A stretch of 63,509 bases of DNA, the filler included, from Mobula birostris (Eukaryota): the NCBI RefSeq assembly GCF_030028105.1. It is 3 parts of 3 records of this genome, joined end to end, with 100 filler letters (N's around TTAATTAATTAA, not from the genome) between each part and the next. Parts side by side here need not be neighbours in the genome. Positions count along the whole stretch, not along the records: positions 1 to 18,680 come from NC_092379.1; 2 more parts are not named here. The stretch is one strand, 5' to 3'. Below the pieces are notes generated by a model. It searched no databases, had not been told where the DNA came from, and worked only from the letters and a program-made list of their open reading frames with translations. Positions 1-18,680 of this stretch are shown piece after piece (position 1 is the first letter of the stretch; the number at the start of each line of letters is the position of its first letter). The translations under genes were made by a program, and so were the position numbers.

Positions 1-82
1 GGCTCCTGTACCTCCCTCCTGATGGCAGCAGCGAGGAGAGAGGAGAGCATGGCCACACAGGGTCACGCACTACGGAAGCAGG

Positions 83-203
83 CCCATTGGCCCAAGCCAA
101 CCCAGATTCCCATTGGCCCATGCCAACCTTGATTCCCATTGGCCCATGCCAAGCTAGATTCCCACTGGCCTGTGCCAACCTAGATTCCCATTGGCCCATG
201 AAC
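83..203. repeat. 26-bp tandem repeat, about 4.5 copies
   Basis: Unit cccattggcccatgccaacctagatt repeated with small variations. Confidence 0.85.
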
Positions 204-269
204 CTCCAGACCTTTCCTATCCATGGACTTGTCCAACTGTCTTTTAATGTACAGGGAGTGGCTGAGAGG

Positions 270-630
270 AATAAGATTTTATTCCTTGGAGTGTAGGAGA
301 CTGAGGGGTGACTATATAGAGGTGTACAAAACAATGAGGGGCACAGATAGGGTGAATGCCCGCAGCCTTTTTCCCCAGGGTTGGGGAATCACAAACCAGT
401 GGGCACAGGTTTAAGGTGAGAGGGGCAAGAATAGGAACCCGAGGGGCAGCTTTTTCACCCGGGCGTTTGTCCGAACATGAAATGAGCTGCCAGAGGAAGT
501 GCTTGAAGCAGGTACATTAATAACATTTAAAGGGGACTTGGATAGGAAAGGCTTAGAGAGATCTAGGCCAAACACAGATGGAGGGGAGTAGCTGGGATGG
601 CAACCGTGGTAGGGCTGAAGGGGCTATGTG
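270..630 (+). mobile_element. CR1-type LINE 3' remnant
   Basis: Degenerate 'SLECRRLRGDYIEVYKTMRG.DRVNA..LFP' CR1 ORF2 C-terminus followed by typical 3' UTR. Confidence 0.7.
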
Positions 631-1119
631 TGAATATATGATAGGAAAGGTTTTAGGGCATATTCTGGAGTTATGGAATATAGCAAATATTAATTTCAGC
701 ATTGACCTGTCTTCAGACCTGAATGTGGATTGTAGATTGAGTTTAAAATGCAGCTCAGAACAATGGTCTTCTTGGAACTGCAGACTGGGATCGATTGCAA
801 ACCAGGAAAGTCACCATGGACCTGAGATGTCTGCATATGCATGAAGGCAACTAAGAGACAGTGGTGATTAACATTCAGTCTTGGGTGTTGGTGTGAAGAA
901 CTAGGTGTTTGAAAACTATACATAACTCAAAGGGAGCATTATGAATGCATTGTATCAATAGAAATTGTCCTACAATGTCATCTAACGTTGGGGTTGGGGA
1001 GCCTCTTCTTCGAAGAATGTCTCCCGTATGATGCCTGGTTGTTGTGCAGAATAAGAGCTTCTATATCCACCAGCTTCAGTGTCTCCCGGTGACTTCATTC
1101 ACAGCCACAACAGGCTAAC

Positions 1120-1515
1120 GTGGGTCAAACGCAGGCAGCCAACGTAATGAAAGACCCTACCCACCCCAGATGTTCTCTCTTCTCCCCTCTCCCTTCGGGC
1201 AGAAGATACAGACTCCTGAAAGCACGTCCCACCAGGCTCAAGGACCAGCTTCTGCCCCACTGCTATCAAACACTTGGACGGTCCTCTTGTACGGTAAGAC
1301 TGACCCTTGACCTCCCAACCTACCTCATTAGGATCTTGTATCTTATCCTTTCCCTGCACTGCACTCTTCCCTGTGGCTGTGACACTTTATCCTGCATTCT
1401 GTTACTGCTTTAGCTCGTTCTACCTCAATGCACTCTGTAATAATCTGATCTTTATGAACTGTGTGCAAGACAAACTTCTCACTGTATTCGGTACTTGTGA
1501 CAGTAATAAACCAAC
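1120..1515 (+). mobile_element. Rex1/Babar-like LINE 3' remnant
   Basis: 'KDPTHPRCSLFSPLPSGRRYRLLKARPTRLKDQ' motif; ends aataaa. Confidence 0.65.
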
Positions 1516-1925
1516 TTACTGACTCCACAGAAGTTTATAAAATTAAGACAGGCACAGACAGACGGGCTAGTGTCTTTTCACAGAAATAAAATCTACAGCA
1601 CATTACAGGAAGGGTGTGGGGGCTTTGGAGAGGGTGCAGAGGGGCTCGCCAGGATGCTGCCTGGATTAGAGGACAGGAGCTGTATGAAGACGTTGGACAA
1701 GGTTGTTTTCTCTGGAGTTAAGGAGGGCGAAGGGAGACCTGACAGAAGTCTATCGATTATGATGGGCAAAGATGGGGTAGACAGTCGGTATCTTTCTCCG
1801 CAAGGTGGAAAGATCGAATACCAGGGGGTGTGAATTTCAGATGGGAGGGGGAGTTTGTGTTTACACAGAGAGTGGTGGGTGCCTGGAATATCCCGCCAGG
1901 GGTGGTGTTGGAGGCAGACTGGCCA

Positions 1926-2420
1926 TCATTTGTCTGGTATGGAGGGGCTGCTGCACGGGACCGAAAGAAGCTGCAGAGGGTTGTAAATCTAGTCAGCTCC
2001 ATCTTGGCTACTAGCCTGCAAAGTACCCAGGACATCTTCACGGAGCAGCGTCTCAGAAAGGCAGCGTCCATTATTAAGGACCTCCAGCACCCAGGGCATG
2101 CCCTTTTCTCACTGTTACCATCAGGTAGGAGGTACAGAAGCCTGAAGGCTCACACTCAACGATTCAGAAACAGCTTCTTCCCCTCTGCCATCCGATTCCT
2201 AAATGGACATTGAAGCTTTGGACACTACCTCACTTTTTTTAATATACAGTATTTCTGTTTTTGCACTTTTTAAATATCTATTCAACATACGTAATTGATT
2301 TACTTGTTTACTTATTTTTTATTTATTTATTTTCTCTGCTAGATTATGTATCGCATTGAACTGCTGCTGCTAAGTTAATGAATTTCATGTCACATGCCGG
2401 TGATAATAAACCTGATTCTG
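1926..2420 (+). mobile_element. Rex1/Babar-like LINE 3' end
   Basis: 'HPGHALFSLLPSGRRYRSLKAHTQRFRNSFFPSAIRFLN' then 3' UTR ending aataaacctgattctg; directly follows a CR1 fragment (about 1530-1925). Confidence 0.75.
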
Positions 2421-2509
2421 GTTTTCAGCAGGGGCAGTGTGGGCTGAATGGATGGTGCCCGCAGTGACCGGTTGCCCCAGTACGGGGCGAGAAGGCAAGG
2501 GGTCTCCCA

Positions 2510-2895
2510 GAGAACCCAGCACATCTGTAGTTGTGAACTTCCCACTATTCAGGACATTTACAAAGACAGGTGTGTGAAAAAGGGGCCCAAAGAATCATTG
2601 GGGACCCGAGTCACCCCAAACTCAAAACTGTTCCAATTCCTACCATCCGGGAAACGGTACCACAGCATAAAAGCCGGGACCAGCAGGCTCCGGGACAGCT
2701 TCTTCCACCAGGCAGATTAACTCACGCTGATACAATTGTATTTCTAAGCTATATTGACTGTCCTGTTGTACATACTATTTATTATAAATTACCATAAATT
2801 GCGCATTGCACATTTAGATGGAGACATACGTAAAGATTTTTACTCCTCATGTATATGAAGGTTGTAAGTAATAAAGTCAATTCAATTCAATTTAC
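2510..2895 (+). mobile_element. Rex1/Babar-like LINE 3' end
   Basis: 'ELPTIQDIYKDRC...LPSGKRYHSIKAGTSRLRDSFFHQA'; tail aataaagtcaattcaattcaatt. Confidence 0.7.
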
Positions 2896-2899
2896 ACCC

Positions 2900-3912
2900 C
2901 TCTCAAACTACTGGGGTACCGCAGGGTTCAGTGCTGGGACCACAGCTATTTACAATATACATTAATGATTTAGATGAAGGGCTTAAATGTAACATTAGTA
3001 AATTTGCAGATGACACAAAGCTGGGTGGCAGTGTGAAATGTGAGGAGGATGTTATGAGAATGCAGGGTGACTTGGACAGGCTGGGTGAGTGGGCAGATGC
3101 GTGGCAGATGCAGTTTAATGTGGATAAATTTGAGATTATCCACTTTGGTGGCAAGAACAGGAAGGCAGATTACTATCTGAATGGTGTCAAGTTAGGAAAA
3201 GGGGAAGCACAATGAGATCTAGGTGTCCTTGTTCATCAGTCACTGAAAGTAAGCATTCAGGTACAGCAGGTAGTGAAGAAAGCTAATGGCATGTTGGCCT
3301 TCATAACAAGGGGAGTTGAGTATAGGAGCAAAGAGGTCCTTCTGCAGTTGTACAGGGCCCTGGTGAGACCCCACCTGGAGTACTGTGTGCAGTTTTGGTG
3401 TCCAAATTTGAGGAAGGACATTCTAGCTATTGAGGAAGTGCAGCGTAGGTTCACGAGGTTAATTCCCGGGATGGCGGAACTGTCATATGTTGAAAGATTG
3501 GAGCGACTGGGCTTGTATACACTGGAATTTAGGGGGATGCAAGGGGATCTGATATAAGATTATTAAGGGATTGGACACTCTAGAGGCAGGAAACATGTTC
3601 CCGATGTTGGGAGAGTCCAGAACCAGAGGGCACAGTTTAAGAATAAGGGGTAGACCATTTAGAATGGAGTTGAGGAAAAACTTTTTCACCCAGAGAGTTG
3701 TGGTTCTGTGGAATGCTCTGTCTCAGAAGACAGTGGAGGCCAATTCTCTGGATCCTTTCAAAAAAGAGTTAGATAGAGCTCTTAAAGATAGCGGAGTGAA
3801 GCGATATGGGGAGAAGGCAGGAAAAGGGTACTGATTGTGGATGGTCAGCCATTCACAGTGAATGGTAGTGCTGGCTCGAAGGGCCGAGGGCCTACTCCTG
3901 CACCTATTGTCT
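2900..3912 (+). mobile_element. CR1 LINE, 5'-truncated, RT to 3' end, with stops
   Basis: GVPQGSVLGP, YINDLD, SKFADDTKLGG, LYRALVRPHLEYCVQFW motifs and 3' UTR. Confidence 0.9.
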
Positions 3913-3951
3913 ATTGTCAAACGCGGCAACGGGTGGAGACACCGGACTCAC

Positions 3952-4335
3952 TGCGCTCGACGGAGAGGGAGATCCCACAGCCACACCAGTCCGTGGCGTT
4001 GACGTCCCAGAGGTTGTCGGTAATCTGGCAGAAGTAGCGGGTGGTGTCGGTGGACGTGGCACGGTTGATCTGCAAGGACATGGTCCCGCGGCGGATGTCC
4101 TTGCGGGCCAGGTAACGGTCGGTGCTCCCGGCGAGGTATATGGGCTGTTGGGAGCCGGGCTCCCAGTACAGCAGTTTCTTGAGGGCTCCTCCCCCACTGG
4201 GAGGCACGTACAACCACAGGAAGTACCGGTTGTCGTGCTGGTAGGAGAACCGGCATTGCAGGGACACCGGAGAGCCCTCAGTGGCCACCATCTTTGCCGA
4301 GGACACGCGGAAGTTGGTTCCAGCCAAGCAGGAGC
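3952..4335 (-). CDS. V-set Ig domain exon with J-like strand in the same exon (non-rearranging VJ-type receptor)
   Basis: Acceptor ctccctAG, donor A|GTGAGT, 384 nt, phase 1-1, open frame: GSCLAGTNFRV..SLQC..YFLW..DTTRYFC..WCGCGISLSVE; no RSS. Confidence 0.85.
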
Positions 4336-4384
4336 CTAGGGAGATTTTTTTAAAAATGGAGTGGTTAGCATCAGTTCCTGCCTC

Positions 4385-5060
4385 CGTATCCCTGGGTCTG
4401 CCTCACACCGGGAGCACCGCGCACAGTTCCCGTCTCCGTACCCCTGGGTCGGACCCACACCGGGAGCACCGCGCACAGTTCCCGTCTCCGTACCCCTGGG
4501 TCGGACCCACACCGGGAGCACCGCGCACAGTTCCCGTCTCCGTACCCCTGGGTCGGATCCACACCGGGAGCACCGCGCACCGTTCCCGTCTCCGTACCCC
4601 TGGGTCGGACCCACACCGGGAGCACCGCGCACAGTTCCCGTCTCCGTACCCCTGGGTCGGACCCACACCGGGAGCACCGCGCACAGTTCCCGTCTCCGTA
4701 CCCCTGGGTCGGATCCACACCGGGAGCACCGCGCACCGTTCCCGTCTCCGTACCCCTGGGTCGGACCCACACCGGGAGCACCGCGCACAGTTCCCGTCTC
4801 CGTACCCCTGGGTCGGACCCACACCGGGAGCACCGCGCACCGTTCCCGTCTCCGTACCCCTGGGTCGGACCCACACCGGGAGCACCACTCACAGTTCCCG
4901 TCTCCGTACCCCTGGGTCGGACCCACACCGGGAGCACCGCGCACAGTTCCCGTCTCCGTACCCCTGGGTCGGACCCACACCGGGAGCACCGCGCACAGTT
5001 CCCGTCTCCATACTCCTGGGTCAGACCCACACCGGGAGCACCGCGCACAGTTCCCGTCTG
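4385..5060. repeat. 52-bp minisatellite A, about 13 copies, in leader-V intron
   Basis: Unit gggtcggacccacaccgggagcaccgcgcacagttcccgtctccgtacccct; period 52 (4451 to 4503). Confidence 0.95.
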
Positions 5061-5111
5061 TGGGTGAGAACCACACCAATGTAATCAGAAGGAAAAGAGT
5101 AGGTCCCTTAC

Positions 5112-5157
5112 CAGCAAAGAGGAGAAGGAGCTGGATCTGAATGATATTTGATACCAT
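5112..5157 (-). CDS. Signal-peptide (leader) exon of the VJ-type gene
   Basis: accagcATGG context, MVSNIIQIQLLLLFA + G|GTAAGG; phase 1 matches the V exon acceptor. Confidence 0.8.
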
Positions 5158-6619
5158 GCTGGTGGGAAAGGTTTCTGTTTGCCAGAGCCCCAGGACCACG
5201 GCACTGCCTGATGGTAGCTGACAGACAACTGTGCTCTGAGAGCACTTTTGCGATGTGGACTCTCGCTCTGAGTCATCCAGGAAACACTGGGAGCTGACAT
5301 GGCACAAAAGATAAGAGGGAGCACAAGACTCTTGGGATGGGTCAAATGGGGATTCCTTCGTGTCTGACCCCGGGAGTGTGTGATGGGACGGTGTGGACGG
5401 AGTTTCACTCTGTGTCTGACCCCGGGAATGTGCGATGGGATGGTGTGGAGGGAGTTTCACTCTGTGTCTGACCGCGGGAGTGTGTGATGGGACGGTGTGG
5501 AGGGAGTTTCACTCAGTGTCTGACCCCGGGAGTGTGTGATGGGACTGTGTGGAGGGAGTTTCACTCTGTGTCTGACCCCGGGAGTGTGTGATGAGATGGT
5601 GTGGACAGAGATTCACTTTGTGTCTGACTCCGGGAGTGTGTGATGGGACAGTGTGGAGGGAGCTTCACTTAGTGTCTGACCCTGGGAGTGTGTGATGGGA
5701 CGGTGTGGAGGGAGATACACTCTGTTTCTAACCCCGGGAGTGTGTGATGGGACGGTGTGGAGGGAGTTTCACTCTGTGTCTGACCCCGGGAATGTGCGAT
5801 GGGATGGTGTGGAGGGAGTTTCACTCTGTGTCTGACCCCGGGAATGTGCGATGGGATGGTGTGGAGGGAGTTTCACTCTGTGTCTGACCGCGGGAGTGTG
5901 TGATGGGACGGTGTGGAGGGAGTTTCACTCTGTGTCTGACCCCGGGAGTGTGTGATGAGATGGTGTGGACAGAGATTCACTTTGTGTCTGACTCCGGGAG
6001 TGTGTGATGGGACAGTGTGGAGGGAGCTTCACTTAGTGTCTGACCCTGGGAGTGTGTGATGGGACGGTGTGGAGGGAGTTTCACTCTGTGTCTGACCCCG
6101 AGAGTGTGTGATGGGACGGTGTGGAGGGAGCTTCACTCTGTGTCTGACTGCGGGAGTGTGTGATGGGACAGTGTGGAGGGAGATTCACTCTGTGTCTGAC
6201 CCCAGGAGTGTGTGATGGGACTGTGTGGAGGGAGCTTCACTCTGTGTCTGACTGCAGGAGTGTGTGATGGGACAGTGTGGAGGGAGTTTCACTCAGTGTC
6301 TGACCCTGGGAGTGTGTGATGGGACAGTGTGGAGGGAGTTTCACTCTGTGTCTGACCCCGGGAGTGTGTGATGGGACGGTGTGGAGGGAGATTCACTCTG
6401 TGTCTGACCCCGGGAGTGTGTGATGGGACGGTGTGGAGGGAGATTCACTCTGTGTCTGACCCCGGGAGTGTGTGATGGGACGGTGTGGAGGGAGATTCAC
6501 TCTGTGTCTGACCCCGGGAGTGTGTGATGGGACGGTGTGGAGGGAGATTCACTCTGTGTCTGACCCTGGGAGTGTGTGGTGGGACGGTGTGGAGGGAGTT
6601 TCACTCTGTGTCTGACCCC

Positions 6620-6960
6620 TTTTTTTTTATTTTTATTTTACAAAATTCTTTATTACAAATGTCGGTGCTATACAATATTTACAAACCCAGTGACTAACAC
6701 ATTTACTACACTACAAACAGACAATACATGTTAAACCAATATATTGCCATCCTCATCAATGATGGCATTTACACACCGCGGAGCCCAACGGTCCCGGAAC
6801 ATCTTGACGGTCGCCGTGGACTGTGCGTATTCCTTTTCAATGTTCACCCGGGCTCGAACATACCCCCTAAACATAGCCAGGCAGTCCGCCCGGGGAGAAC
6901 CTCCTGCCACCCTTTTCCAGGAGCCACGGATGGCAATTTTCGCCAGCCCCAGGAGCAAGT
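6620..6960 (-). mobile_element. Tx1-clade LINE 3' end (341 bp) inserted in satellite B
   Basis: Poly(A) tail and AATAAA on minus strand; encodes LLLGLAKIAI..IIDEDGNILV*; about 97% identical by eye to 3' end of 16658-18306. Confidence 0.9.
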
Positions 6961-7292
6961 TTCACTCTGTGTCTGACCCCGGGAGTGTGTGATGGGACAG
7001 TGTGGAGGGAGTTTCACTCAGTGTCTGACCCCGGGAGTGTGTGATGGGATGGTGTGGAGGGAGTTTCACTCTGTGTCTGACCCCGGGAGTGTGTGATGGG
7101 ACGGTGTGGAGGGAGTTTCACTCTGTGTCTGACCCCGGGAGTGTGTGATGGGACGGTGTGGAGGGAGATTCACTCTGTGTCTGACCCCGGGAGTGTGTGA
7201 TGGGACGGTGTGGAGGGAGATTCACTCTGTGTCTGACCCTGGGAGTGTGTGGTGGGACGGTGTGGAGGGAGTTTCACTCTGTGTCTGACCCC

Positions 7293-7633
7293 TTTTTTTT
7301 TATTTTTATTTTACAAAATTCTTTATTACAAATGTCGGTGCTATACAATATTTACAAACCCAGTGACTAACACATTTACTACACTACAAACAGACAATAC
7401 ATGTTAAACCAATATATTGCCATCCTCATCAATGATGGCATTTACACCCCGCGGAGCCCAACGGTCCCGGAACATCTTGACGGTCGCCGTGGACTGTGCG
7501 TATTCCTTTTCAATGTTCACCCGGGCTCGAACATACCCCCTAAACATAGCCAGGCAGTCCGCCCGGGGAGAACCTCCTGCCACCCTTTTCCAGGAGCCAC
7601 GGATGGCAATTTTCGCCAGCCCCAGGAGCAAGT
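7293..7633 (-). mobile_element. Duplicate of the 341-bp Tx1 3' end
   Basis: Same junctions, offset 673 bp, one substitution seen. Confidence 0.9.
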
Positions 7634-9239
7634 TTCACTCTGTGTCTGACCCCGGGAGTGTGTGATGGGACAGTGTGGAGGGAGTTTCACTCAGTGTCTG
7701 ACCCCGGGAGTGTGTGATGGGATGGTGTGGAGGGAGTTTCACTCTGTGTCTGACCCCGGGAGTGTGTGATGGGACGGTGTGGAGGGAGTTTCACTCTGTG
7801 TCTGACCCCGGGAGTGTGTGATGGGACGGTGTGGAGGGAGTTTCACTCTGTGTCTGACCCTGGGAGGGAGTGATGGGACGGTGTGGATGGAGTTTCACTC
7901 TGTGTCTGACCCCGGGAGTGTGTGATGGGACGGTGTGGAGGGAGCTTCACTCTGTGTCTGACCCCGGGAGTGTGTGATGGGACGGTGTGGAGGGAGTTTC
8001 ACTCAGTGACTGACCCCGGGAGTGTGTGATGGGACGGTGTGGAGGGAGTTTCACTCTGTGTCTGACCCCGGGAGTGTGTGATGGGACGGTGTGGAGGGAG
8101 ATTCACTCTGTGTCTGACCCCGGGAGTGTGTGATGGGACGGTGTGGAGGGAGTTTCACTCTGTGTCTGACCCCGGGAGTGTGTGATGGGACGGTGTGGAG
8201 GGAGTTTCACTCTGTGTCTGACCCCGGGAGTGTGTGATGGGACGGTGTGGAGGGAGTTTCACTCGGTGTCTGACCCTGGGAGTGTGTGATGGGACGGTGT
8301 GGAGGGAGTTTCACTCGGTGTCTGACCCCGGGAGTGTGTGATGGGACGGTGTGGAGGGTGTTTCACTCTGTGTCTGACCCCGGGAGTGTGTGATGGGACG
8401 GTGTGGAGGGAGTTTCACTCTGTGTCTGACCCCGGGAGTATGTGATGGGACGGTGTGGAGGGAGTTTCATTCAGTGTCTGACCCCGGGAGTGTGTGATGG
8501 GACGGTGTGGAGGGAGATTCACTCTGTGTCTGACCCTGGGAGGGAGTGATGGGACGGTGTGGAGGGAGTTTCACTCTGTGTCTGACCCCGGGAGTGTGTG
8601 ATGGGACGGTGTGGAGGGAGTTTCACTCTGTGTCTGACCCCGGGAGTGTGTGATGGGACGGTGTGGAGGGAGTTTCATTCTGTGCCTGACCCTGGGAGTG
8701 TGTGATGGGACGGTGTGGAGGGAGATTCACTCTGTGTCTGACCCTGGGAGTGTGTGATGGGACGGTGTGGAGGGAGTTTCACTCTGTGTCCGGCCCCGGG
8801 AGTGTGTGATGGGACGGTGTGGAGGGAGATTCACTCTGTGTCTGACCCTGGGAGTGTGTGATGGGACGGTGTGGAGGGAGATTCACTCTGTGTCCGGCCC
8901 CGGGAGTGTGTGATGGGACGGTGTGGAGGGAGTTTCACTCTGTGTCCGGCCCCGGGAGTGTGTGATGGGACGGTGTGGAGGGAGATTCACTCTGTGTCTG
9001 ACCCTGGGAGTGTGTGATGGGACGGTGTGGAGGGAGTTTCACTCTGTGTCTGACCCGGGAGTGTGTGATGGGACGGTGTGGAGGGAGATTCACTGTGTGT
9101 CTGACCCTGGGAGGGAGTGATGGGACGGATGGAGGGAGAGTTACATTTTGAAGACTATTGAGAACAGGAATTTCACAGTGGACGTTCATACCCTGAGGAG
9201 TGTTGTAGAAAAGAGAGACCTAGGGGTTGGTTTGGCACA

Positions 9240-9485
9240 TGGATTGGCATGGGGCAGGAGGGCCGAATGGCTTGCGGTTGTTTTGTTGTGATGTGGGGTG
9301 TGGGCGGAGCCAACACTGTCAATCAACTGATGGAAGAGTGACAGCTGTCAGTACTGGGGGTTGGTCAATGAGCTGTCCGTCAGAGGAGTAGGCGGGCCTC
9401 CGGGCGGAAGTGATGCACCGGGCCTACCGTTCGCTTTGCAGCCTCGGGCTCGAGTTGTGGCTACGGCCCGGAGCCCGGAACCAAG
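9240..9485 (+). promoter_or_regulatory. METTL3 CpG-rich promoter / 5' UTR
   Basis: GC box GGGCGG 9302-9307, ETS motif CGGAAGTG 9405-9412, CpG-rich, upstream of ATG. Confidence 0.55.
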
Positions 9486-9576
9486 ATGTCAGACACGTGG
9501 AGCGACATCCAGGCCCACAAGAAGCAGCTACACAGTCTGAGGGAGAGGCTGCAGCGGAGGCGGAGGGAGCCAGGCG
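9486..9576 (+). CDS. METTL3: m6A methyltransferase catalytic subunit, coding exon 1
   Basis: MSDTWSDIQAHKKQLHSLRERLQRRRRE matches recalled vertebrate METTL3 N-terminus; donor G|GTGAGG, phase 1. Confidence 0.95.
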
Positions 9577-9589
9577 GTGAGGGGAAGAA

Positions 9590-10650
9590 GAAGGGGCTGG
9601 GGAAAGGGAAGTTAAAGGGGAGGGGAGGTGGAGATGGAGGGTGGGTCGGGGTTTGGATTGGAGGGGAGGGGCATGTAGCTGGTGGACAGTGGAAAGGGAG
9701 GGGCAGGGGAGGGGAGGAAAAGGTGTAGGGAGAGGGAGAGGGGTGTGGGTTAAGAAGGAAGGGGATAGGGGTAGTTTGAGGGGGAGGGGGAGAGGGATGA
9801 GGAAGGAGGTTGAGGGGTAGGGGTGGAGTTGAGAGGGAGGGAATGGGGCAGGGGGTTGAGGGTGATGGGGGCCGGGGGGTTGGAGGGGGATTGGGCCGGG
9901 GGGGGGGGTGGTTGAGGGGGAATTTGAGGTGGGAAGGGGATTGTCAAGGGGAGTTTAAGGGTGATGAGGGCCGGGGGGGTTTAAGGGGGATGGGGCCAGG
10001 GGAGTTTAAGGGTGATGGGGGCTGGGGGGGTTTAAGGGGGATGGGGAGGGGGTTGAGGGGGAATTTGAGGTGGGTGGGGGATGGGGCCAAGGGGAGTTTA
10101 AGGTTGATGGGGGCCGGGGGGGTTGAGGGGGAGTTTGAGGTGGGTGGGGGATGGGGCCAGGGGAATTTAAGGGTGATGGGGGCCAGGGCGTTTAAGGGGG
10201 AGGGGGTTGAGGGGGAGTTTGAGGTGGCAGTGGGAAGGGGCAAGGGGACTTTAAGGGTGATGGGGGCCAGGGGGTGGGGTTGAGGGGGATGGGGCAGTGG
10301 GGGGTTAAGGGGGAGTTTGAGGTGGGAAGGGGATGGGGCAAGCAGAGTTTGAGGTGGGAGTAGGAAGGGGATGGGGGCAGGGGGAGTTTGGGGTGGGAGG
10401 GGTGAGGTGGATCGGGGTGGTGAGAGGTTATGGGGTACAAGGGGTGGTGGGAGGGTGTAGATGGAGGTTCATTGGGGGTTGGAGGATGAGGGGGAGGGTT
10501 GATGGGAAGGGGGTGGTGAGGGGGAGAGGGAAGGGAGTGATGAAACTGGAGCAGAGCCAGTTTGGGGGTGGAATTAGGCAGGATGCAAGAGAGGTTGGTC
10601 GGGTGAGGCTGTTTGAAGGGAAGGGAATGAACGGCAAATGGGAGTGAAGT
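9590..10650 (+). repeat. G-rich, C-poor degenerate repeat in METTL3 intron 1
   Basis: Recurrent ggggagtttaagggtgatggggg / tttgaggtggg units with dense G-runs. Confidence 0.85.
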
Positions 10651-10924
10651 ATTAAGTGTCCAGCTAACACATGTACTGTCTGGGCAAACCAGGAGAGTTT
10701 AGGGAACCCTGGCTGAGGAGAGATGTTGGAGCTCAGGTGAAGAAGAAGAAAGAAGCATGGTTTAGGAGATCAGGATAGAGCAAGTCCCTCGATCACTATA
10801 AAGTAAGAATACTCTTACAAGGGAAATCGGAAGGGCAAAAGGAGGAAATGAGGTGGATCTAGCAGGTAGGGTTAAGGAAAATCCTGGGAAGTTTTATAGC
10901 GAGATTAAAAGTAAACGATGACTA

Positions 10925-11976
10925 CATAAAACATAGAATAGTACAGCACAGTACAGGCCCTTCGGCCCACAATGTTGTGCCGACCCTCAAACCCTGCCTC
11001 CCATATAAGCCCCCACCTTAGATTCCTCCATATACCTGTCTAGTAGTCTCTTAAACTTCACTAGTGTATCTGCCTCCACCACTGACTCAGGCAGTGCATT
11101 CCACGCACCAACCACTCTCTGAGTAAAAAACCTTCCTCTAATATCCCCCTTGAACATCCCACCCCTTATCTTAAAGCCATGTCCTCTTGTATTGAGCAGT
11201 GGTGCCCTGGGGAAGAGGTGCTGGCTATCCACTCTATCTATTCCTCTTATTATCTTGTACACCTCTATCATGTCTCCTCTCATCTCCTTCTCTCCAAAGA
11301 GTAAAGCCTTAGCTCCCTTAATCTCTGATCATAATGCATACTCTCTAAACCAGGCAGCATCCTGGTAAATCTCCTCTGTACCCTTTCCAATGCTTCCACA
11401 TCCTTCCTATAGTGAGGCGACCAGATCTGGACACAGTACTCCAGGTGTGGCCAAACCAGAGTTTTATAGAGCTGCATCATTACATCGCGACTCTTAAACT
11501 CTGTCCCTCGACTTATGAAAGCTAACACCCCATAAGCTTTCTTAACTACCGTATCTACCTGTGAGGCAACTTTCAGGGATCTGTGCACATGTACCCCGAG
11601 ATCCCTCTGCTCCTCCACACTACCAAGTATCCTGCCATTTACTTTGTACTCTGCCTTGGAGTTTGTCCTTCCAAAGTGTACCACCTCACACTTCTCCGGG
11701 TTGACCTCCATCTGCCACTTCTCAGCCCACTTCTGCAACCTGTCAATGTCTCTCTGCAATCTTCGACAATTCTCTACACTATCTACAACACCACCAACCT
11801 TTGTGTCGGCTGCAAACTTGCCAGCCCACCCTTCTACCCCCACATCCAGGTCATTAATAAAAATCACGAAAAGTAGAGGTCCCAGAACAGATCCTTGTGG
11901 GACACCACTAGTCACAATCCTCCAATCTGAATGTACTCCCTCCACCACCACCCTCTGCCTTCTGCAGGCAAGCCAA
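10925..11976 (-). mobile_element. CR1 LINE, young subfamily, 5'-truncated
   Basis: 223-aa open RT stretch SGVPQGSVLGP..FAADTK..; intact 3' UTR; near-identical to 48150-49392. Confidence 0.92.
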
Positions 11977-12159
11977 GACTAGAGAGAGAGTAAGTCAACT
12001 TAGGGATCAGCACGGCTGCCTGTATCCTGAGCCACTGGAGATGGGTGGGAATTTCAACGAGTATTTATCTTCTGTAGTTAATGAGAAGGAAAATATGACT
12101 GCTCAGAAGGTTGGGAAAATGTGGAGATCTTTTGGAAGGCAGTCATTTTACCAGGGTGG

Positions 12160-12536
12160 ATACATATAAAATTCTAAAGGGATTGGACAGGCTAGATGTA
12201 AGAAGATTGTTCCCAATGTTGGGGAAGTCCAGAACAAGGGGTCACAATTTGAGGATAAAGGGGAAGCCTTTTAGGACAGAGATGAGGAAAAACTTCTTCA
12301 CACAGAGAGTGGTGAATCTGTGCAATCCTCTGCCACAGGAAATAGTTGAGGCCAGTTCATTGGCTATATTTAAGAGGGAGTTAGATAAAGCCCTTGTGGC
12401 TAAAGGGATCAGGGGGTATGGAGGGAAGGCAGGTACAGGGTTCTGAGTTGGATGATCAGCCATGATCGTAATGAATGGCGGTGCAGGCCCGAGGGGCGGA
12501 ATGGCCTACTCCTGCACCTATTTTCTATGTTTCTGT
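12160..12536 (+). mobile_element. CR1 LINE 3' end
   Basis: 'YKILKGLDRLD..RTRGHNLRIKG..KNFFTQRVVNL' plus 3' UTR. Confidence 0.85.
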
Positions 12537-12539
12537 TCA

Positions 12540-15290
12540 CAAGCCTGACTGAGCACATCCCAGGACTTTGTAGGAGGCCCGAGAGGAAATTGCAGAGACC
12601 CTTGTCTTCATCCTTTGCTTCATTGTTCACCACTGGTGGAGTTCCCGAAGACAGGGAGGTGGCTAATATGTAGCAGTGACAAGCAGGAAACTCCAGGCCA
12701 GGCAGCCTGACCTCAGTGGTAGGGAGGTTACTGGAGGGAATTCCTAGGGTCAGTATCTACCAGCGACAAGTGTCTGATCCAGAGGAGTCAGTGTGGCTCT
12801 GTGTGCTCGACGAGCCTCTTTGGAGATGTTTTTTGAAGAGATTACCACAAAGGTAATCGGGGATAGGGCAGTGGATGTAGTCCATTTGGACTTTTGGAAG
12901 GCATTTGACATGATCCCACGTGGTAGACTGGTCTGGAAGGTCGGGTCCCGTGGAGTCCAGGGAGAGCGAGTTTGGTAGATTCAAAACTGTCTCAGTGGTA
13001 GGAAGCAAGAGGATAGTGGATGAAGATTGTTTCTCAGACCAGAGACTGGAGACTAGTGGTGTGCCAGTAATCAGTGTTGGGACCTTTGTTATTTATAGTC
13101 AAAGAGAAGTACAGCAGCCCATCTAGTCCATGCCGAAACCATTTAAACTGCCTACTCCCACCGTCCTGCACCGGGACCATAGCCCTCCATACCCCTACTA
13201 CATATGTACCTATCCAAACTTCTCTTAAACATTGAAATCGAGCTCGTATCCACCACTTATGTTGGCAGCTCATTCCACATTCTCACGACCGTCTGAGTGA
13301 AGAAGATTCCCCTCATGTTTCCCTTAAACTTCTCACCTTTCACCCTAAACCCATGACCCCTGGTTGTAGTCCCGCCCAACCTCAGTGGAAAAAGCCTGCT
13401 TGCAGTTACCCTACCTATACCCTTCATAATTTTGAATACTTCTATCAAAACTCCTTTTAGTCTTCTACTTTCTCAGGATACAGTCCTAACCTTTTCAATC
13501 TTTCCTTATAACTCAGGTCCTCCAGACCCAGCAACATCCTTGTAAATTTTCTCTGCACTCTTTCAAACCTGTTTACATCTTTCCTGTATGTAGGTGACCA
13601 AAACTGCGAACAGTACTCCAAATTAGGCCTCACCAACGTCTTATAGAACTTCAACATAACATCCCAACTCCTGTACTCAGTACTTTGATTTATGAAGGTC
13701 AAGGTTGCAGAAGCTTTCTTTACAACCCTATCGACTTGGGACAACACTTTCAAGGAATTATGAACCTGTATTCACAGAATAAATAATTTGTTATATGTAT
13801 CAGTGATTTGGACGTGAGTGATCAGTAGGTTTTGCAGATGACATAAAATTAGGAGGTTTGTTGATAGTGAAGTAGATTGTCATAGATTGCAAGGGGGGGA
13901 TCTTGATCAGTTAGGAAGTGGGCCGTGCAGTGGCAAATAGATTTCAGTACAGATAAGTGTGAGGTGCTACATACTGACCCTACAGGTAGAAAGGGCCATT
14001 AGGAAAGCTTTTGGCACATTGGCCTTCATAAATCAATGTATTGAGTACAGGAAATGAGATCTGTTGAAATTGATTAAGACGTTGGTAAGGCCTAATTTGG
14101 AGTACCGTGTGCAGTTTTGGGCACCTACCTGCAGGAAAGATGTAAATAAGATTGAAAATTTACAAGGATACTAGCTATAAGGGAAGATTGAATAGGTTAG
14201 GGCAGAGATTTAGGGAAGATCTGATGGAGTGGTACGGATAGGGCAAATGAAAGCAGGCTTTTTCCACTGAGGTGGGTGGGACTAAACAACCAGAGGTCGT
14301 GGGTTAAGGGTGACAGGTGAGAAGTTAAAGGGGAACATGAGAGGAAACTTCCTCCCTCAGAGGGTGGTGAGTGTGTGGAACAAGCTACCAGCACAAGTGG
14401 TGCATGTGATTTTGATTTCAACATTCAAGAGAACTTTGGATCGGTACGTGGATGGGAGGGGTATGGAGACTGTGGTCTATTTGCAGATCAGTAAAATTAC
14501 ACAGTTTAAATGGTTTGGCACAGACTAGATGGGCCAAAAGGCCTGTTTCTGTGCTGTAGTTTTCTGTGACTCTATTTTAGAAAGTCAAACCAGCGCAGGA
14601 CTTGTACTATGGGGTGTAATGGTACACAGTGGCCCAGGGGTACAGGTACATGGTTGCCTGAAAGTGGAGTCACGGGGAGACAGGGTGGTGAAGAAGACGT
14701 CTGGCACGCTGGCTTTCATCAGGGGGTGTAGGAGAAGAGACGTTATGTTGCAGATGTAAGAGACACTGGCGAGGCCACACTTGGAGTACTGTGCACAGTT
14801 TTGGAAAGACGTGGCTCAGCTGGAAAGAGGGCAGAGAAGATTCACGAGGAAGTTGCCAGGGCCAGAGGGTGAGGTCGGCCAGGCAAGATCTTCATGCAGT
14901 AGGAACATAGGAGAACGAGGGACACCCGTACAGAAATGTTTAAAATGATGAGAGGCACAGCTGGGATGAACAGTAACAGTCATTTCCCCAGGGCAGGGGA
15001 GTCCAAATCTGGAAGGCACAGATTTAGGGTGAGAGGGGAGAGATTTAAAAGGGACCCCAGGGACAACATTTGCATTTGAGTTTATGGAACGAGCTGCTGG
15101 AGGGGGAGTTGAGGCAGGGACAATAGTGTCATCTGAAGCACTTGGGCAGGGACATGGAGAGGTGGGGCTTCGGGGGCTATGAGCTGAAAGCAGAGCATTG
15201 AGATGAGCCGGGTCGGGCCTGTGGTCAGCATGGACTAGTCGGGCTGAAGGGCCTGTATCTGTGCTCTATGCGACTCTGTGATCTGTGGAA
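12540..15290. mobile_element. Cluster of fragmented CR1 remnants in both orientations
   Basis: 'LDFWKAFD..PRGRL' (+), 'LVRPNLEYCSQFW' (-, about 13100-13765) and several 3' ends (+). Confidence 0.75.
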
Positions 15291-15651
15291 AAGCGTGAGT
15301 AAATAGCTGGACCGTGACGCCGTGCAGGAATTTGCCCCAGTTAGAGAGAGCGGTTCCCTCAGGCAGAGGCAGAGTGTGTGGATAACATGGAAGGTCGAGG
15401 ACAGAGTCAGGCATGCAAAGTGTCAGAGGCCAGTGGTGGGACTGAGGACTGGCGAGTCTGCAGGGCTCTCGAGAAGGGAAGACTGATCTTAAACCATACT
15501 TGTGTGTGTTCTTGGTACTGGATAGCATGGATCGGTTGGGCCAAAGGGCATGTGTGCGTCCTGTTGGACTCCGTGATGAGGTGACCTGGGTGGGGATGGG
15601 GTCACTAAGATACACACCCCCCTCAACCACACCTTGCCTTTGCCTCCACAG

Positions 15652-15860
15652 CCCAGACAGAGACTGCTCAGGGGGTAGGTGCAGGCCTGCGTAGTGACAG
15701 CCCAGTCCCGCCGGCTGCCCTACCACCCACCAAACCCAGTGGCCTGGACCAGGATGAGAAGATTGACCCCCTCCTCGAGAGGCGGCTGCTCGAGCACCTC
15801 TCCAACCAGGCTCTGCTTCTGCCCACCGACTCGCTTGCCATCCAGAACGCCTTGTTGTCG
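15652..15860 (+). CDS. METTL3: METTL3 coding exon 2
   Basis: Acceptor cctccacAG, donor |GTGAGA; LRSDSPVP..IDPLLERRLLEHLSNQALLLPTDSLAI matches recalled METTL3; exons 1+2 = 300 nt in frame. Confidence 0.92.
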
Positions 15861-15899
15861 GTGAGAGATGGGGGAATGGAGTGCCGCTGAGTCGGGCAC

Positions 15900-18680
15900 A
15901 GGGTGAGACTCCCTCCACACTGTCCCATCACACACAGGCTGAGGCTCCCAACATACCATTCTATCACACACTCATGGAGTCAGACACAGAGTGAAACTCC
16001 CTCCACACCGTCCCATCACACACTCCCAGGGTCAGACACAGAGTGAAACTCCCTCCACACTGTCCCATCACACACTCCCGGGGTCAGACACAGAGTGAAT
16101 CTCCCTCCACACCGTCCCATCACACACTCCCGGGGTCAGACACAGAGTGAAACTCCATCCACACCATCCCATCACACACTCCCAGGGTCAGACACAGAGT
16201 GAAACTCTATCCACACCATCCCATCACACACTCCCAGGGTCAGACACAGAGTGAAACTCCCTCCACACTGTCCCATCACACACTCCCGGGGTCAGACACA
16301 GAGTGAAACTCCATCCACACCATACCATCACACACTCCCGGAGTCAGACACAGAGTGAAACTCCCTCCACACCGTTCCATCACACACTCCCAGGGTCAGA
16401 CACAGAGTGAAACTCCCTCCACACCGTCCCATCACACACTCCCGGGGTCAGACACAGAGTGAATCTCCCTCCACACAGTCCCATCACACACTCCCGGGGT
16501 CAGACACAGAGTGAAACTCCATCCACACCATCCCATCACACACTCCCAGGGTCAGACACAGAGTGAAACTCTATCCACACCATCCCATCACACACTCCCA
16601 GGGTCAGACACAGAGTGAAACTCCCTCCACACTGTCCCATCACACACTCCCAGGGTCTGCGGAGGATGCGCGAGTGCCAAGATGCTTTCTCGGCGGCATC
16701 CTCCGCCAGGATCAACTGGGCGAAATGTTCCGGACTCTTAGTAGGCCAGTGGCAGATGGACTCCCTGCCGGAGGAGATGAGAGCTTTTGAGTGGAGCACC
16801 AGACGTCTTCTCTATCTGGGAGTCTACCTGAGTCCTTCTGGGGAGACCTGACTGGCAAACTGGCAGGACCTGGAGACAAAGGTCATGGCCCGGCTAGGGC
16901 GCTGGTCAGGCCTTCTCAGGGTGCTTTCCTATCGAGGCAGGGCGGTGGTCATAAACCAGCTGGTGGCCTCCATGTTGTGGTACCGGATGGTCACCTTGGC
17001 CCCCCCTGCCCCTTTTGTCGCAAGAATGCAGAGGAAGCTAGTGGACTTCTTCTGGGGAAACAGGAAGCACTGGGTCTCTGCAGCGGTTCTGAGTCTCCCA
17101 GAAGGAGAGGGCGGACAGTCGCTGGTGTGTGTACGCACACGACTGGCGGCTCTCCGCCTCAGGACTCTGCAGAGATTCCTGTACGCCGAGCACCCTCCCA
17201 GGTGGCACGTGTTGGCGACTTTCTTCCTCCGGAGGGGCTGCTGTCTTGCCGAAGATATGCAGCTACCACCGGCGGGCGTCAGCCGTGCAGCTTTGCAGAG
17301 GCTGCCCGGCTTCTATCAGGACCTACTGAGAGTCTGGAACATGGTTGCCTCAGGCCGGGAATCCCCTCCTCTGGCAGAGGGTGGGGTCCTGGCCGACCCT
17401 TGCCCTGTCTCAACAGATGTCAGTGTGGCTCAGATGTGTGGAACGACTCGGGCTGAGCTGCTCGTCGGGCCCAGGCCCCGCAGCCTTACCCGAGAGACGA
17501 ATCCACACAACTTGAGCCATCTTTCATCAACACCCACAATCCCATTCAGGGATGCAGGCAGGAGGTACCTTTATGGGCTGCTGCTCCACACCCTCCACTT
17601 CCTAGCCCTTGTCCACCGTCCCGACACGCCATGGCGGTCGGTCTTTCCACCTGGAGGTGAGGGGGGTCCCCAATGGAAGTCCCTCTACAGGGGAGTCCTC
17701 CCCATGCACCTTGGGGATCTCGGCTGGAGGGTGCTGCACAAAGCGGTGCCCTGCAATAAGTTCTTTAGTTTGTACACGGATCTCCCAGCCGCGTGTCACT
17801 TCTGCGGGCTGGAGGAGACCGTGTACCATATGTACGTGGAGTGTGTGAGGCTGCAGCCCCTTTTCGCGTATTTGCGTGGGCTGCTTCTCGCCTTCTGGTT
17901 GCATTTCAGTCCCACCCTATTCATATATGGTCATCCAGTAAGGAGGGGGGCACAGAGGGATGAGGATGTCCTTGTCAACTTGCTCCTGGGACTGGCGAAA
18001 ATTGCCATCCGTGGCTCCTGGAAAAGGGTGGCAGGAGGTTCTCCCCGGGCGGACTGCCTGGCTATGTTTAGGGGGTATGTTCGTGCCCGGGTGAATATTG
18101 AAAAGGAATACACACAGTCCACGGCGACCGTAGAGATGTTCCGGGACCGTTGGGCTCCGCGGGGTGTAAATGCCATCATTGATGAGCATGGCAATATATT
18201 GGTTTAACATGTATTGTCTGCTGTAGTGTAGTAAATCTGTTAGTCACTGGGTTTGTAAATATTGTATAGCACCGACATTTGTAATAAAGAATTTTGTAAA
18301 AAAAAAGGGTCAGACACAGAGTGAATCTCCCTCTACACCGTCCCATCACACACTCCCGGGGTCAGACACAGAGTGAAACTCCCTCCACACCATCCCATCA
18401 CACACTCCCGGGGTCAGGCACAGGGTGAAACTCCCTCCACACCATCCTATCACACACTCCCGGAGTCAGACACAGAGTGAAGCTCCCTCCACACCGTCCC
18501 ATCACACACTCCCGGGGTCAGGCACAGAGTGAAACTCTCTCCACACCATCCCATCACACACTCCCGGGGTCAGGCACAGGGTGAAACTCCCTCCACACCG
18601 TCCCATCACACACTCTCGGGGTCAGACACAAAGTGAATCTCCCTCTACACCGTCCCATCACACACACCCGGGGTCAGACA
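15900..18680. repeat. 52-bp satellite B, C-rich orientation, in METTL3 intron 2, running to contig end
   Basis: Unit gggtcagacacagagtgaaactccctccacaccgtcccatcacacactcccg. Confidence 0.97.
16658..18306 (+). mobile_element. Tx1-clade LINE, 5'-truncated ORF2 (late RT + CCHC zinc finger), inserted in satellite B
   Basis: One frame with a single TGA (16849-51); YLGV, FFWG..HW, LSLP..EGG, C-x2-C..ETVYH..C; AATAAA 18283, poly(A); (a)gggtc repeated at both flanks. Confidence 0.92.

Follow-up and report, generated by a model that had tools for sequence, protein, structure and literature searches.

Does a retrotransposon found repeatedly within a tandem repeat choose its position there, or do its copies simply persist and multiply in such surroundings? 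This question is raised by a stretch of DNA from the cartilaginous fish Mobula birostris (RefSeq assembly GCF_030028105.1), 63,509 nt in length with filler included and referred to here as the window, whose positions 1 to 18,680 come from record NC_092379.1. Within it, three 3' fragments of one long interspersed element (LINE) break up a 52-bp repeat, satellite B, and all are oriented alike with respect to the repeat unit. An initial annotation, made from the sequence alone, had placed these copies at 6620-6960, 7293-7633 and 16658-18306 and proposed that the LINE targets one nucleotide of the satellite; coordinates and orientation were confirmed. The analysis reported here favors a real preference of the LINE for a single satellite B site, to which we assign a probability of about 0.65. 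Preference is supported by the evidence, but exclusivity is not.

LINE fragments and their junctions in satellite B

In the sense orientation of the LINE, the unit of satellite B reads GGGTCAGACACAGAGTGAAACTCCCTCCACACCGTCCCATCACACACTCCCG. It forms two arrays, 5360-9138 and 15963-18680, which are oppositely oriented to each other and contain the LINE fragments. The components are as follows, with ORF2 denoting the second open reading frame (ORF), RT reverse transcriptase and UTR the untranslated region.

5360..6619, minus strand: satellite B array, antisense to the LINE on the plus strand; 3' flank of short copy A
6620..6960, minus strand: short copy A, a 5'-truncated Tx1-like LINE 3' end with the last 76 codons, the 3' UTR and an interrupted A-rich tail
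6961..7292, minus strand: satellite B, 6.4 units separating short copies A and B, inside a 673-bp duplicated block
7293..7633, minus strand: short copy B, derived by duplication from copy A and differing from it at 1 of 341 nt
7634..9138, minus strand: satellite B array, 29 units
15963..16657, plus strand: satellite B array, reversed relative to the arrays on the left; lies 5' of the long copy and ends in ...CTCCCAGGGTC
16658..18306, plus strand: long copy, a 5'-truncated Tx1-like LINE with the RT end, C-terminal domain, 3' UTR and A9 tail
16852..18207, plus strand: C-terminal 451 codons of ORF2, thumb/linker and Tx1-type C-terminal domain
17794..17844, plus strand: Cys-X2-Cys...His-X4-Cys zinc motif, CHFCGLEETVYHMYVEC
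18283..18306, plus strand: AATAAA signal (18283-18288) and A9 tail (18298-18306)
18307..18680, plus strand: satellite B, 7.2 units; 3' flank of the long copy, starting GGGTCAGAC

The array at 5360..6619 is described by Tandem Repeats Finder (TRF) as 24 copies of period 52 with 91% matches, and its units average 95% identity to their consensus. A search of the window against Rfam gave zero RNA family matches, and thus the satellite has no recognizable ancestry in a small nuclear RNA (snRNA), tRNA or 5S gene. The 52-bp unit was not found in the literature searched, and a broad literature search on shark satellites and LINEs returned nothing pertinent. Another repeat of the window, satellite A (4372-5059), also has a period of 52 bp, with 13 units, 96% matches and 70% G+C; the long ORFs that span it are repeat artefacts. 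When its unit is rotated, the two satellites have in common a GGGTC(G/A)GAC start and a CCC end, with about 50% identity by eye, and from this resemblance satellite A may be a distant relative of satellite B.

The long copy carries a single frame at 16642-18207 that ends with TAA at 18205-18207 and contains one internal stop, TGA at 16849-16851. Only about 64 RT codons are retained. In the region of the zinc motif, the Pfam zf-RVT match is weak (E 0.0015, below the gathering score). Short copy A is 96.4% identical to positions 17977-18306 of the long copy. The differences between the long and short copies that the initial annotation had estimated at about 10 in 320 positions, along with those in the tail and the apparent target-site duplication, agree with our count of 10 in approximately 320 nt and with tails that differ by 11 nt.

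The point at which the LINE joins the satellite is the same in every copy. Read on the sense strand, the short copy ends ...A9|GGGGTCAGAC, with the tail of short copy A abutting GGGGTCAGAC at 6619/6620, and the long copy ends ...A9|GGGTCAGAC. Each poly(A) tract therefore meets (G/A)GGGTCAGAC immediately after CTCCC, as both junction sequences state. The 5' flank of the long copy ends in CTCCCAGGGTC, and its target unit is a CCCAGGG variant in which the first A may belong either to the tail or to the target. Because of this ambiguity, both junctions are placed at CTCCC^(G/A)GGGTCAGAC. The insertion site, CCC^RGGGTCAGAC, lies at the center of CCCGGG, and the motif CTCCC(G/A)GGGTCAGACA is present at 49 of the 73 satellite unit boundaries in the window.

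This target is not of the L1 type, because the A/T-rich, TT/AAAA-like character of such sites is missing. The site is G+C-rich and offers no A run on the sense strand and no T run on the nicked strand that could pair with poly(A), while the only A run of the unit (GTGAAAC) is unused by the insertions. The earlier observation of a poly(A) joined at a non-L1 site thus stands, with the same junction in every copy and no A-rich motif. Since the orientation is constant even though CCCGGG is a palindrome, recognition must reach asymmetric bases on its flanks, for instance GTCAGAC. As for the target itself, 5-6 bp, (A)GGGTC, appear duplicated in the long copy and 20-23 bp, GGGGTCAGACACAGAGTGAA plus up to ACT, in the short copy, where a 4-nt AACT microhomology at the 5' junction obscures the exact extent.

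How many insertions these three fragments represent determines how much weight a common junction can bear. A shift of 673 bp overlays 6285-7165 on 6958-7838 with only 7 mismatches in 881 nt. Short copies A and B also have an identical truncation point, the same interrupted 20-nt tail and the same flanking unit variants (e.g., CCCTGG and GTGGTGGG). In light of these shared features, the short copies are the product of one insertion followed by a 673-bp tandem duplication. Thus, all three fragments initially reported are present, but the short pair reflects a single event, and the window holds two independent insertions rather than three. The repeated block itself (a 341-nt LINE fragment plus 332 nt of satellite) spans 6285-7838 as about 2.3 tandem copies with 99.2% identity, and a retrotransposon fragment is here being incorporated into a higher-order repeat of the satellite.

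The independence of the long and short copies was examined through their flanks, their tails and the positions at which they differ. The 374 nt on the 3' side of the long copy are 91.7% identical in register to the matching flank of the short copy, and sliding the flanks by whole units gives 89-92%. In comparison, the LINE parts are approximately 97% identical (10 differences in 320 positions versus 31 in 374 for the flank; Fisher p = 0.005). Flanks that had descended together with the LINE should match its level of similarity, and the in-register flanks instead equal the background, which argues for independent insertions. The tails differ as well, being A9 in the long copy and the interrupted 20-nt TAAAATAAAAATAAAAAAAAA in the short copy.

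Further evidence comes from other members of the family, which were collected from Logan contigs of coded public sequencing runs representing three organisms that have both the LINE and the satellite. At four of the ten differences (17991, 18112, 18187 and 18221), all contigs of all runs carry the letter of the short copy, and the changes are consequently private to the long copy. Run X1 has only the letters of the long copy at 18132 and 18237, whereas X3, X2 and X7 have mostly those of the short copy. Position 18096 is a polymorphism of the family that is split within X3. Because three differences fall on family polymorphisms, the two copies come from different source lineages.

The initial annotation had suggested at least two independent insertions, and this is borne out by the background-level flanks, the differing tails and the subfamily-diagnostic positions. 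From these sequence comparisons, the long and short copies are read as independent insertions. An opposing view, whose deletion step was already raised at the outset, is that all three copies derive from one ancestral insertion whose array was duplicated and inverted, after which a deletion at the AACT microhomology removed the 5' 1.3 kb along with part of a satellite unit. This would be consistent with flanking arrays that lie in opposite orientation within 9 kb, with the 4-nt AACT overlap at the 5' junction of the short copy, and with the local duplication that is active at the locus. It is at odds with flanks that are not orthologous and with tails that differ by an 11-nt block. Moreover, random mutations arising after a duplication would rarely place three of ten differences at polymorphisms that split X1 from X3, X2 and X7. 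An inverted duplication of the unique DNA adjoining both arrays was searched for and not found. On the evidence of flanks, polymorphisms, tails and unique DNA, we reject a single ancestral insertion, including its AACT-deletion form, as highly improbable.

Affinity to the Tx1 clade

The final 451 codons were modeled with AlphaFold2 (mean pLDDT 82.9), and the model was searched with Foldseek against Swiss-Prot. The best match was the Xenopus protein P14381 (Transposon TX1 149 kDa protein), with E 1.9e-30, a template modeling (TM) score of 0.83 and 35% identity. The ORF2 proteins of mouse, loris and human L1 followed at E ~1e-7, TM 0.55-0.59 and 11-13% identity. By BLASTP, the C-terminal region aligns end to end with an NCBI protein named 'transposon TX1', with 30% identity over 501 aa. 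Predicted structure and protein sequence therefore agree in pointing to a Tx1-clade affinity, which is well supported. The initial assignment to this clade is upheld most clearly by the Foldseek scores, where P14381 is far ahead of L1 ORF2.

No member of the LINE family of the window was present in the protein database, where the top match is 72% identical. The closest full-length relative found, L001, resides on an ENA contig (ERZ25070917) and has 72% amino acid identity to the window LINE over the RT C-terminal region (about one third of the query) and 78% nucleotide identity over the 3' part of the RT. Its ORF2 includes the Pfam domains Exo_endo_phos and RVT_1, and scores 537 bits with a 'transposon TX1' protein versus 217 bits with human L1 ORF2p. 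Due to 5' truncation, the apurinic-type (APE) endonuclease is outside all copies in the window, and it is in L001 that this domain (Exo_endo_phos) is seen.

L001 comprises complete 6.7-kb Tx1-like copies, each with an unnamed ORF1 followed by ORF2, that are arranged in a head-to-tail tandem array and are 96.9% identical. At one junction (5742-5800), A44 is followed by the (GA)6 spacer GAGAGAGAGAGG and then by the 5' UTR. At the other (12467-12505), A34 leads directly onto a 5' UTR that is 4 nt shorter, with no spacer. A target remnant sandwiched between tandem insertions is a pattern described for target-specific elements in the SINEU section of Kojima (2015, Genome Biol Evol, PMC4494074). Among teleosts, two Tx1-clade families insert specifically into microsatellites, Kibi into (TC)n and Koshi into (TTC)n (Kojima and Fujiwara 2004, as cited in passages of PMC4494074 and PMC3812793). 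By analogy, L001 looks target-specific, with microsatellite targeting of the Kibi type, and the window LINE would then sit beside such a lineage.

Two other relatives, L002 and L003, are short contigs that stop in or before the tail and supply no flank. A separate ENA contig, that of P0001 (ERZ26222911), carries at least six repeats, with a period of 2,504 nt, of a LINE C-terminal ORF of 622 aa that is 54% identical to that of the window. It is a further example of a truncated Tx1-like fragment amplified in tandem.

Recurrence of the junction and its explanations

Whether the junction seen in the window is typical of the family can be approached through the run contigs, which were aligned with a query made up of the final 147 nt of the LINE and the adjoining 15 nt of flank. 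In these contigs, the summed depth of the satellite is about 50-200 times that of the LINE. In X7, the tail passes into the satellite in the same register (...A AGGGTCTGACACAGAGTAAATCTCCCTCCA). Three contigs of X1 (consensus agreement 0.56) continue with the satellite-like GTCTGACACAGA after one or two extra A, and one X1 contig has a variant tail followed by GGAAGTACACAGAGTG, which is read as a diverged satellite variant. The tail passes to the satellite in the same register in X1 records 6 and 8, and record 23 of X3 has a same-register junction that continues into a diverged unit. The satellite junction therefore recurs with different tail lengths and unit variants, as these records show, yet it is not the sole flank of the LINE.

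The raw reads of run X21 (organism F) contained no LINE and only a handful of satellite reads at 90-95%. In JGI metagenome contigs, neither an exact 27-mer from the 3' end of the LINE nor a protein-based scan found a match. In six runs guessed to be RNA (X4, X11, X12, X14, X17 and X18; organisms A and C), 40-51% of the sampled words of the LINE were observed, where DNA carry-over is possible. The LINE family may accordingly be transcribed, to the extent that these word counts reflect RNA.

Several observations weigh against a preference for satellite B. The tail runs into the non-satellite sequence GAATCAATCC... in X3 and X7 and into ATGACTACTG... in X7, and in an X3 contig it is followed by GGGTC and then GCACCGGG..., which loosely recalls satellite A. 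Of the summed depth at the 3' end of the LINE, approximately 1.4-5.6% reaches the 15-nt satellite flank, a figure that is not readable as a share of copies because tail lengths vary, contig depth is flat and flanks present in one copy are lost where coverage is low. Contig depth is in general a crude measure, being constant along each contig, and variation in tail length splits the words that span a junction. Only two independent events are directly visible, and the endonuclease is not among the parts kept in the window copies. The apparent target duplication is inconstant (5-6 versus 20-23 bp), with satellite periodicity, truncation and microhomology joining as confounding factors. Finally, the same-register junctions elsewhere could be descendants of a few old insertions that were amplified along with the satellite, a route that the 673-bp duplication shows to be feasible.

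This last point can be extended to the proposal that the LINE is barely or not at all target-specific, such that its copies persist in satellite heterochromatin, expansion of the arrays multiplies a few of them and the shared junction is coincidental. Hitch-hiking amplification is proven by the 673-bp duplication, and the non-satellite flanks in other runs and the small depth entering the satellite would be expected. Low-coverage Logan contigs also under-assemble unique flanks and favor repeated ones, which inflates the number of visible satellite junctions. Nevertheless, two insertions within the satellite would agree in phase and orientation by chance with a probability of only about 1/104, and the site lacks any run with which a poly(A) tail could pair. 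The additional same-register junctions differ in their tails and unit variants, and target preference is common among members of the Tx1 clade, according to passages of Kojima (2015; PMC4494074). We consider coincidence unlikely for these reasons.

Specificity might also be real but shallow, with the endonuclease reading a short motif (approximately CCC^NGGGTC) that is found genome-wide, so that the satellite dominates through motif supply and no dedicated homing is involved. Such a supply is ample, since 49 of 73 unit boundaries offer one site per unit, and the neighboring satellite A contains CCCCTGGGTCGGAC, a motif similar to CCC-N-GGGTC. The X3 flank outside satellite B that begins with GGGTC after the tail is likewise what a short motif would produce. 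The CCCGGG palindrome by itself does not account for the constant orientation, which demands recognition of the asymmetric flanks, and the readable non-satellite flanks are too few to define a motif. A short recognition sequence is thus quite improbable as the full explanation.

Preference of the LINE for one satellite B site remains the reading we favor, and a plausible course of events can be outlined for it. The APE-type endonuclease of ORF2 would nick the bottom strand at 5'-GACCC(C/T)^GGGAG-3', which corresponds to CTCCC^(G/A)GGGTCAGAC in the sense orientation. The freed 3'-OH would then prime reverse transcription on the poly(A) of the LINE RNA (target-primed reverse transcription). A variable second-strand cut, 5-6 or 20-23 bp downstream, together with joining of the 5' end through microhomology after incomplete cDNA synthesis, could account for the differing duplications and truncations. 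Satellite dynamics would afterward copy the embedded fragments, of which the 673-bp block is an example. The insertion site is most likely set by the endonuclease rather than by some other bias, and we infer that the family as a whole prefers CCC^RGGGTCAGAC.

A more far-reaching version can be offered only tentatively and is on balance doubtful. It would hold that a dedicated, satellite-homing Tx1 lineage exists in elasmobranchs, whose endonuclease recognizes an extended asymmetric target around CCC^RGGGTCAGAC, a motif common to two neighboring 52-bp satellites. Most copies would reside in the satellite, fragments would join higher-order repeats, and LINE and satellite would co-evolve across several species.

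Neighboring elements and related systems

Other repeats and one gene fragment surround the arrays. Fragments of a CR1-like LINE include an RT fragment (Pfam RVT_1) at 11280-11951 on the minus strand, two copies of a C-terminal tail ORF with the motif FFTQRVV (1830-2213 and 12111-12446, both on the plus strand), and a repeat pair with 76% identity (3552-3914 versus 12164-12528). Among named sequences, the RT fragment is matched best in elasmobranchs (Hypanus 88%, Chiloscyllium 75%, Stegostoma 74%), which identifies the host as a cartilaginous fish. Directly adjoining satellite A, an ORF at 3917-4327 on the minus strand encodes an immunoglobulin V-set domain (Pfam E 3.6e-10) and is probably an exon of an immunoglobulin-superfamily gene. 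The left satellite B array is adjoined by a G-rich, strongly strand-skewed minisatellite (9800-10400) with periods of 24-154 nt and units like GGGGGATGGGGCC... and GGGGAGTTTAAGG. An inverted repeat pair at 13117-13718 and 14003-14534 (301 nt at 79% and 158 nt at 82%) encloses about 300 nt and may represent a foldback element or the termini of a DNA transposon.

Site preference is well established for the clade to which the LINE appears to belong. Kojima (2015; PMC4494074) reports, in the passages on targets, that many Tx1-clade elements have a target preference, and the targets listed there include Tx1D, U2 snRNA genes, (TC)n, (TTC)n, (TTCC)n, mariner, Harbinger and long terminal repeat (LTR) elements. 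The initial annotation was therefore correct in stating that the clade includes sequence-specific families, a statement that this source supports directly. It erred in treating satellite homing as undescribed for Tx1, because 'Sat, satellites' is among the known Tx1 targets in the legend of Fig. 3 of the same paper. The 'Sat' families embody the same concept of LINEs residing preferentially in satellite DNA. That legend leaves the families unnamed and mentions neither their hosts nor the sequences targeted, so that the window LINE may or may not be one of them. The LINE described here is probably a new Tx1 member of this already known satellite-target type, and the concept is not new.

Comparison with individual systems delimits what is particular about this case. 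Tx1L of Xenopus laevis (P14381) is, like the window LINE, a polyadenylated LINE of the L1/Tx1 group and prefers a repeated target, but that target is the piggyBac-type DNA transposon Tx1D (in the target passages of PMC4494074) rather than a satellite. Kibi and Koshi also direct themselves to tandem repeats, and the (GA)n remnant of L001 recalls the (TC)n-specific Kibi. These families insert into 2-3-bp microsatellites in teleosts, whereas the window LINE occupies one position of a complex 52-bp unit in a cartilaginous fish. Human and mouse L1 elements have in common with the window LINE their poly(A) priming, 5' truncation, 5'-junction microhomology and Cys-His C-terminal domain; the further likeness in APE-type endonuclease and RT is seen here only in the relative L001. 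L1 nicks at the A/T-rich TTTT/AA, in contrast to CCC^RGGG, and C-terminal identity to L1 ORF2 is only 11-13%. TRAS and SART likewise home to a fixed position within a tandem repeat; they are APE-type elements of the R1 clade specific for telomeric TTAGG repeats and therefore differ in clade and target. The same is true of YURE, an element of the restriction-like endonuclease (RLE) type in a U2-derived satellite of Ciona (PMC4640811), which differs in clade, endonuclease type and target.

In nature, site-specific LINEs exemplify DNA insertion that is templated by RNA and targeted by sequence, and new pairs of endonuclease and target can inform how APE-type endonucleases acquire long recognition sites. 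If the preference proposed here is true, then the LINE of M. birostris would be a vertebrate example of a Tx1 element with enormous numbers of natural targets, each a single nucleotide in a unit of a very abundant 52-bp satellite, and would show retrotransposon fragments entering higher-order satellite repeats. Its value would be that of a well-defined new case rather than of a new principle.

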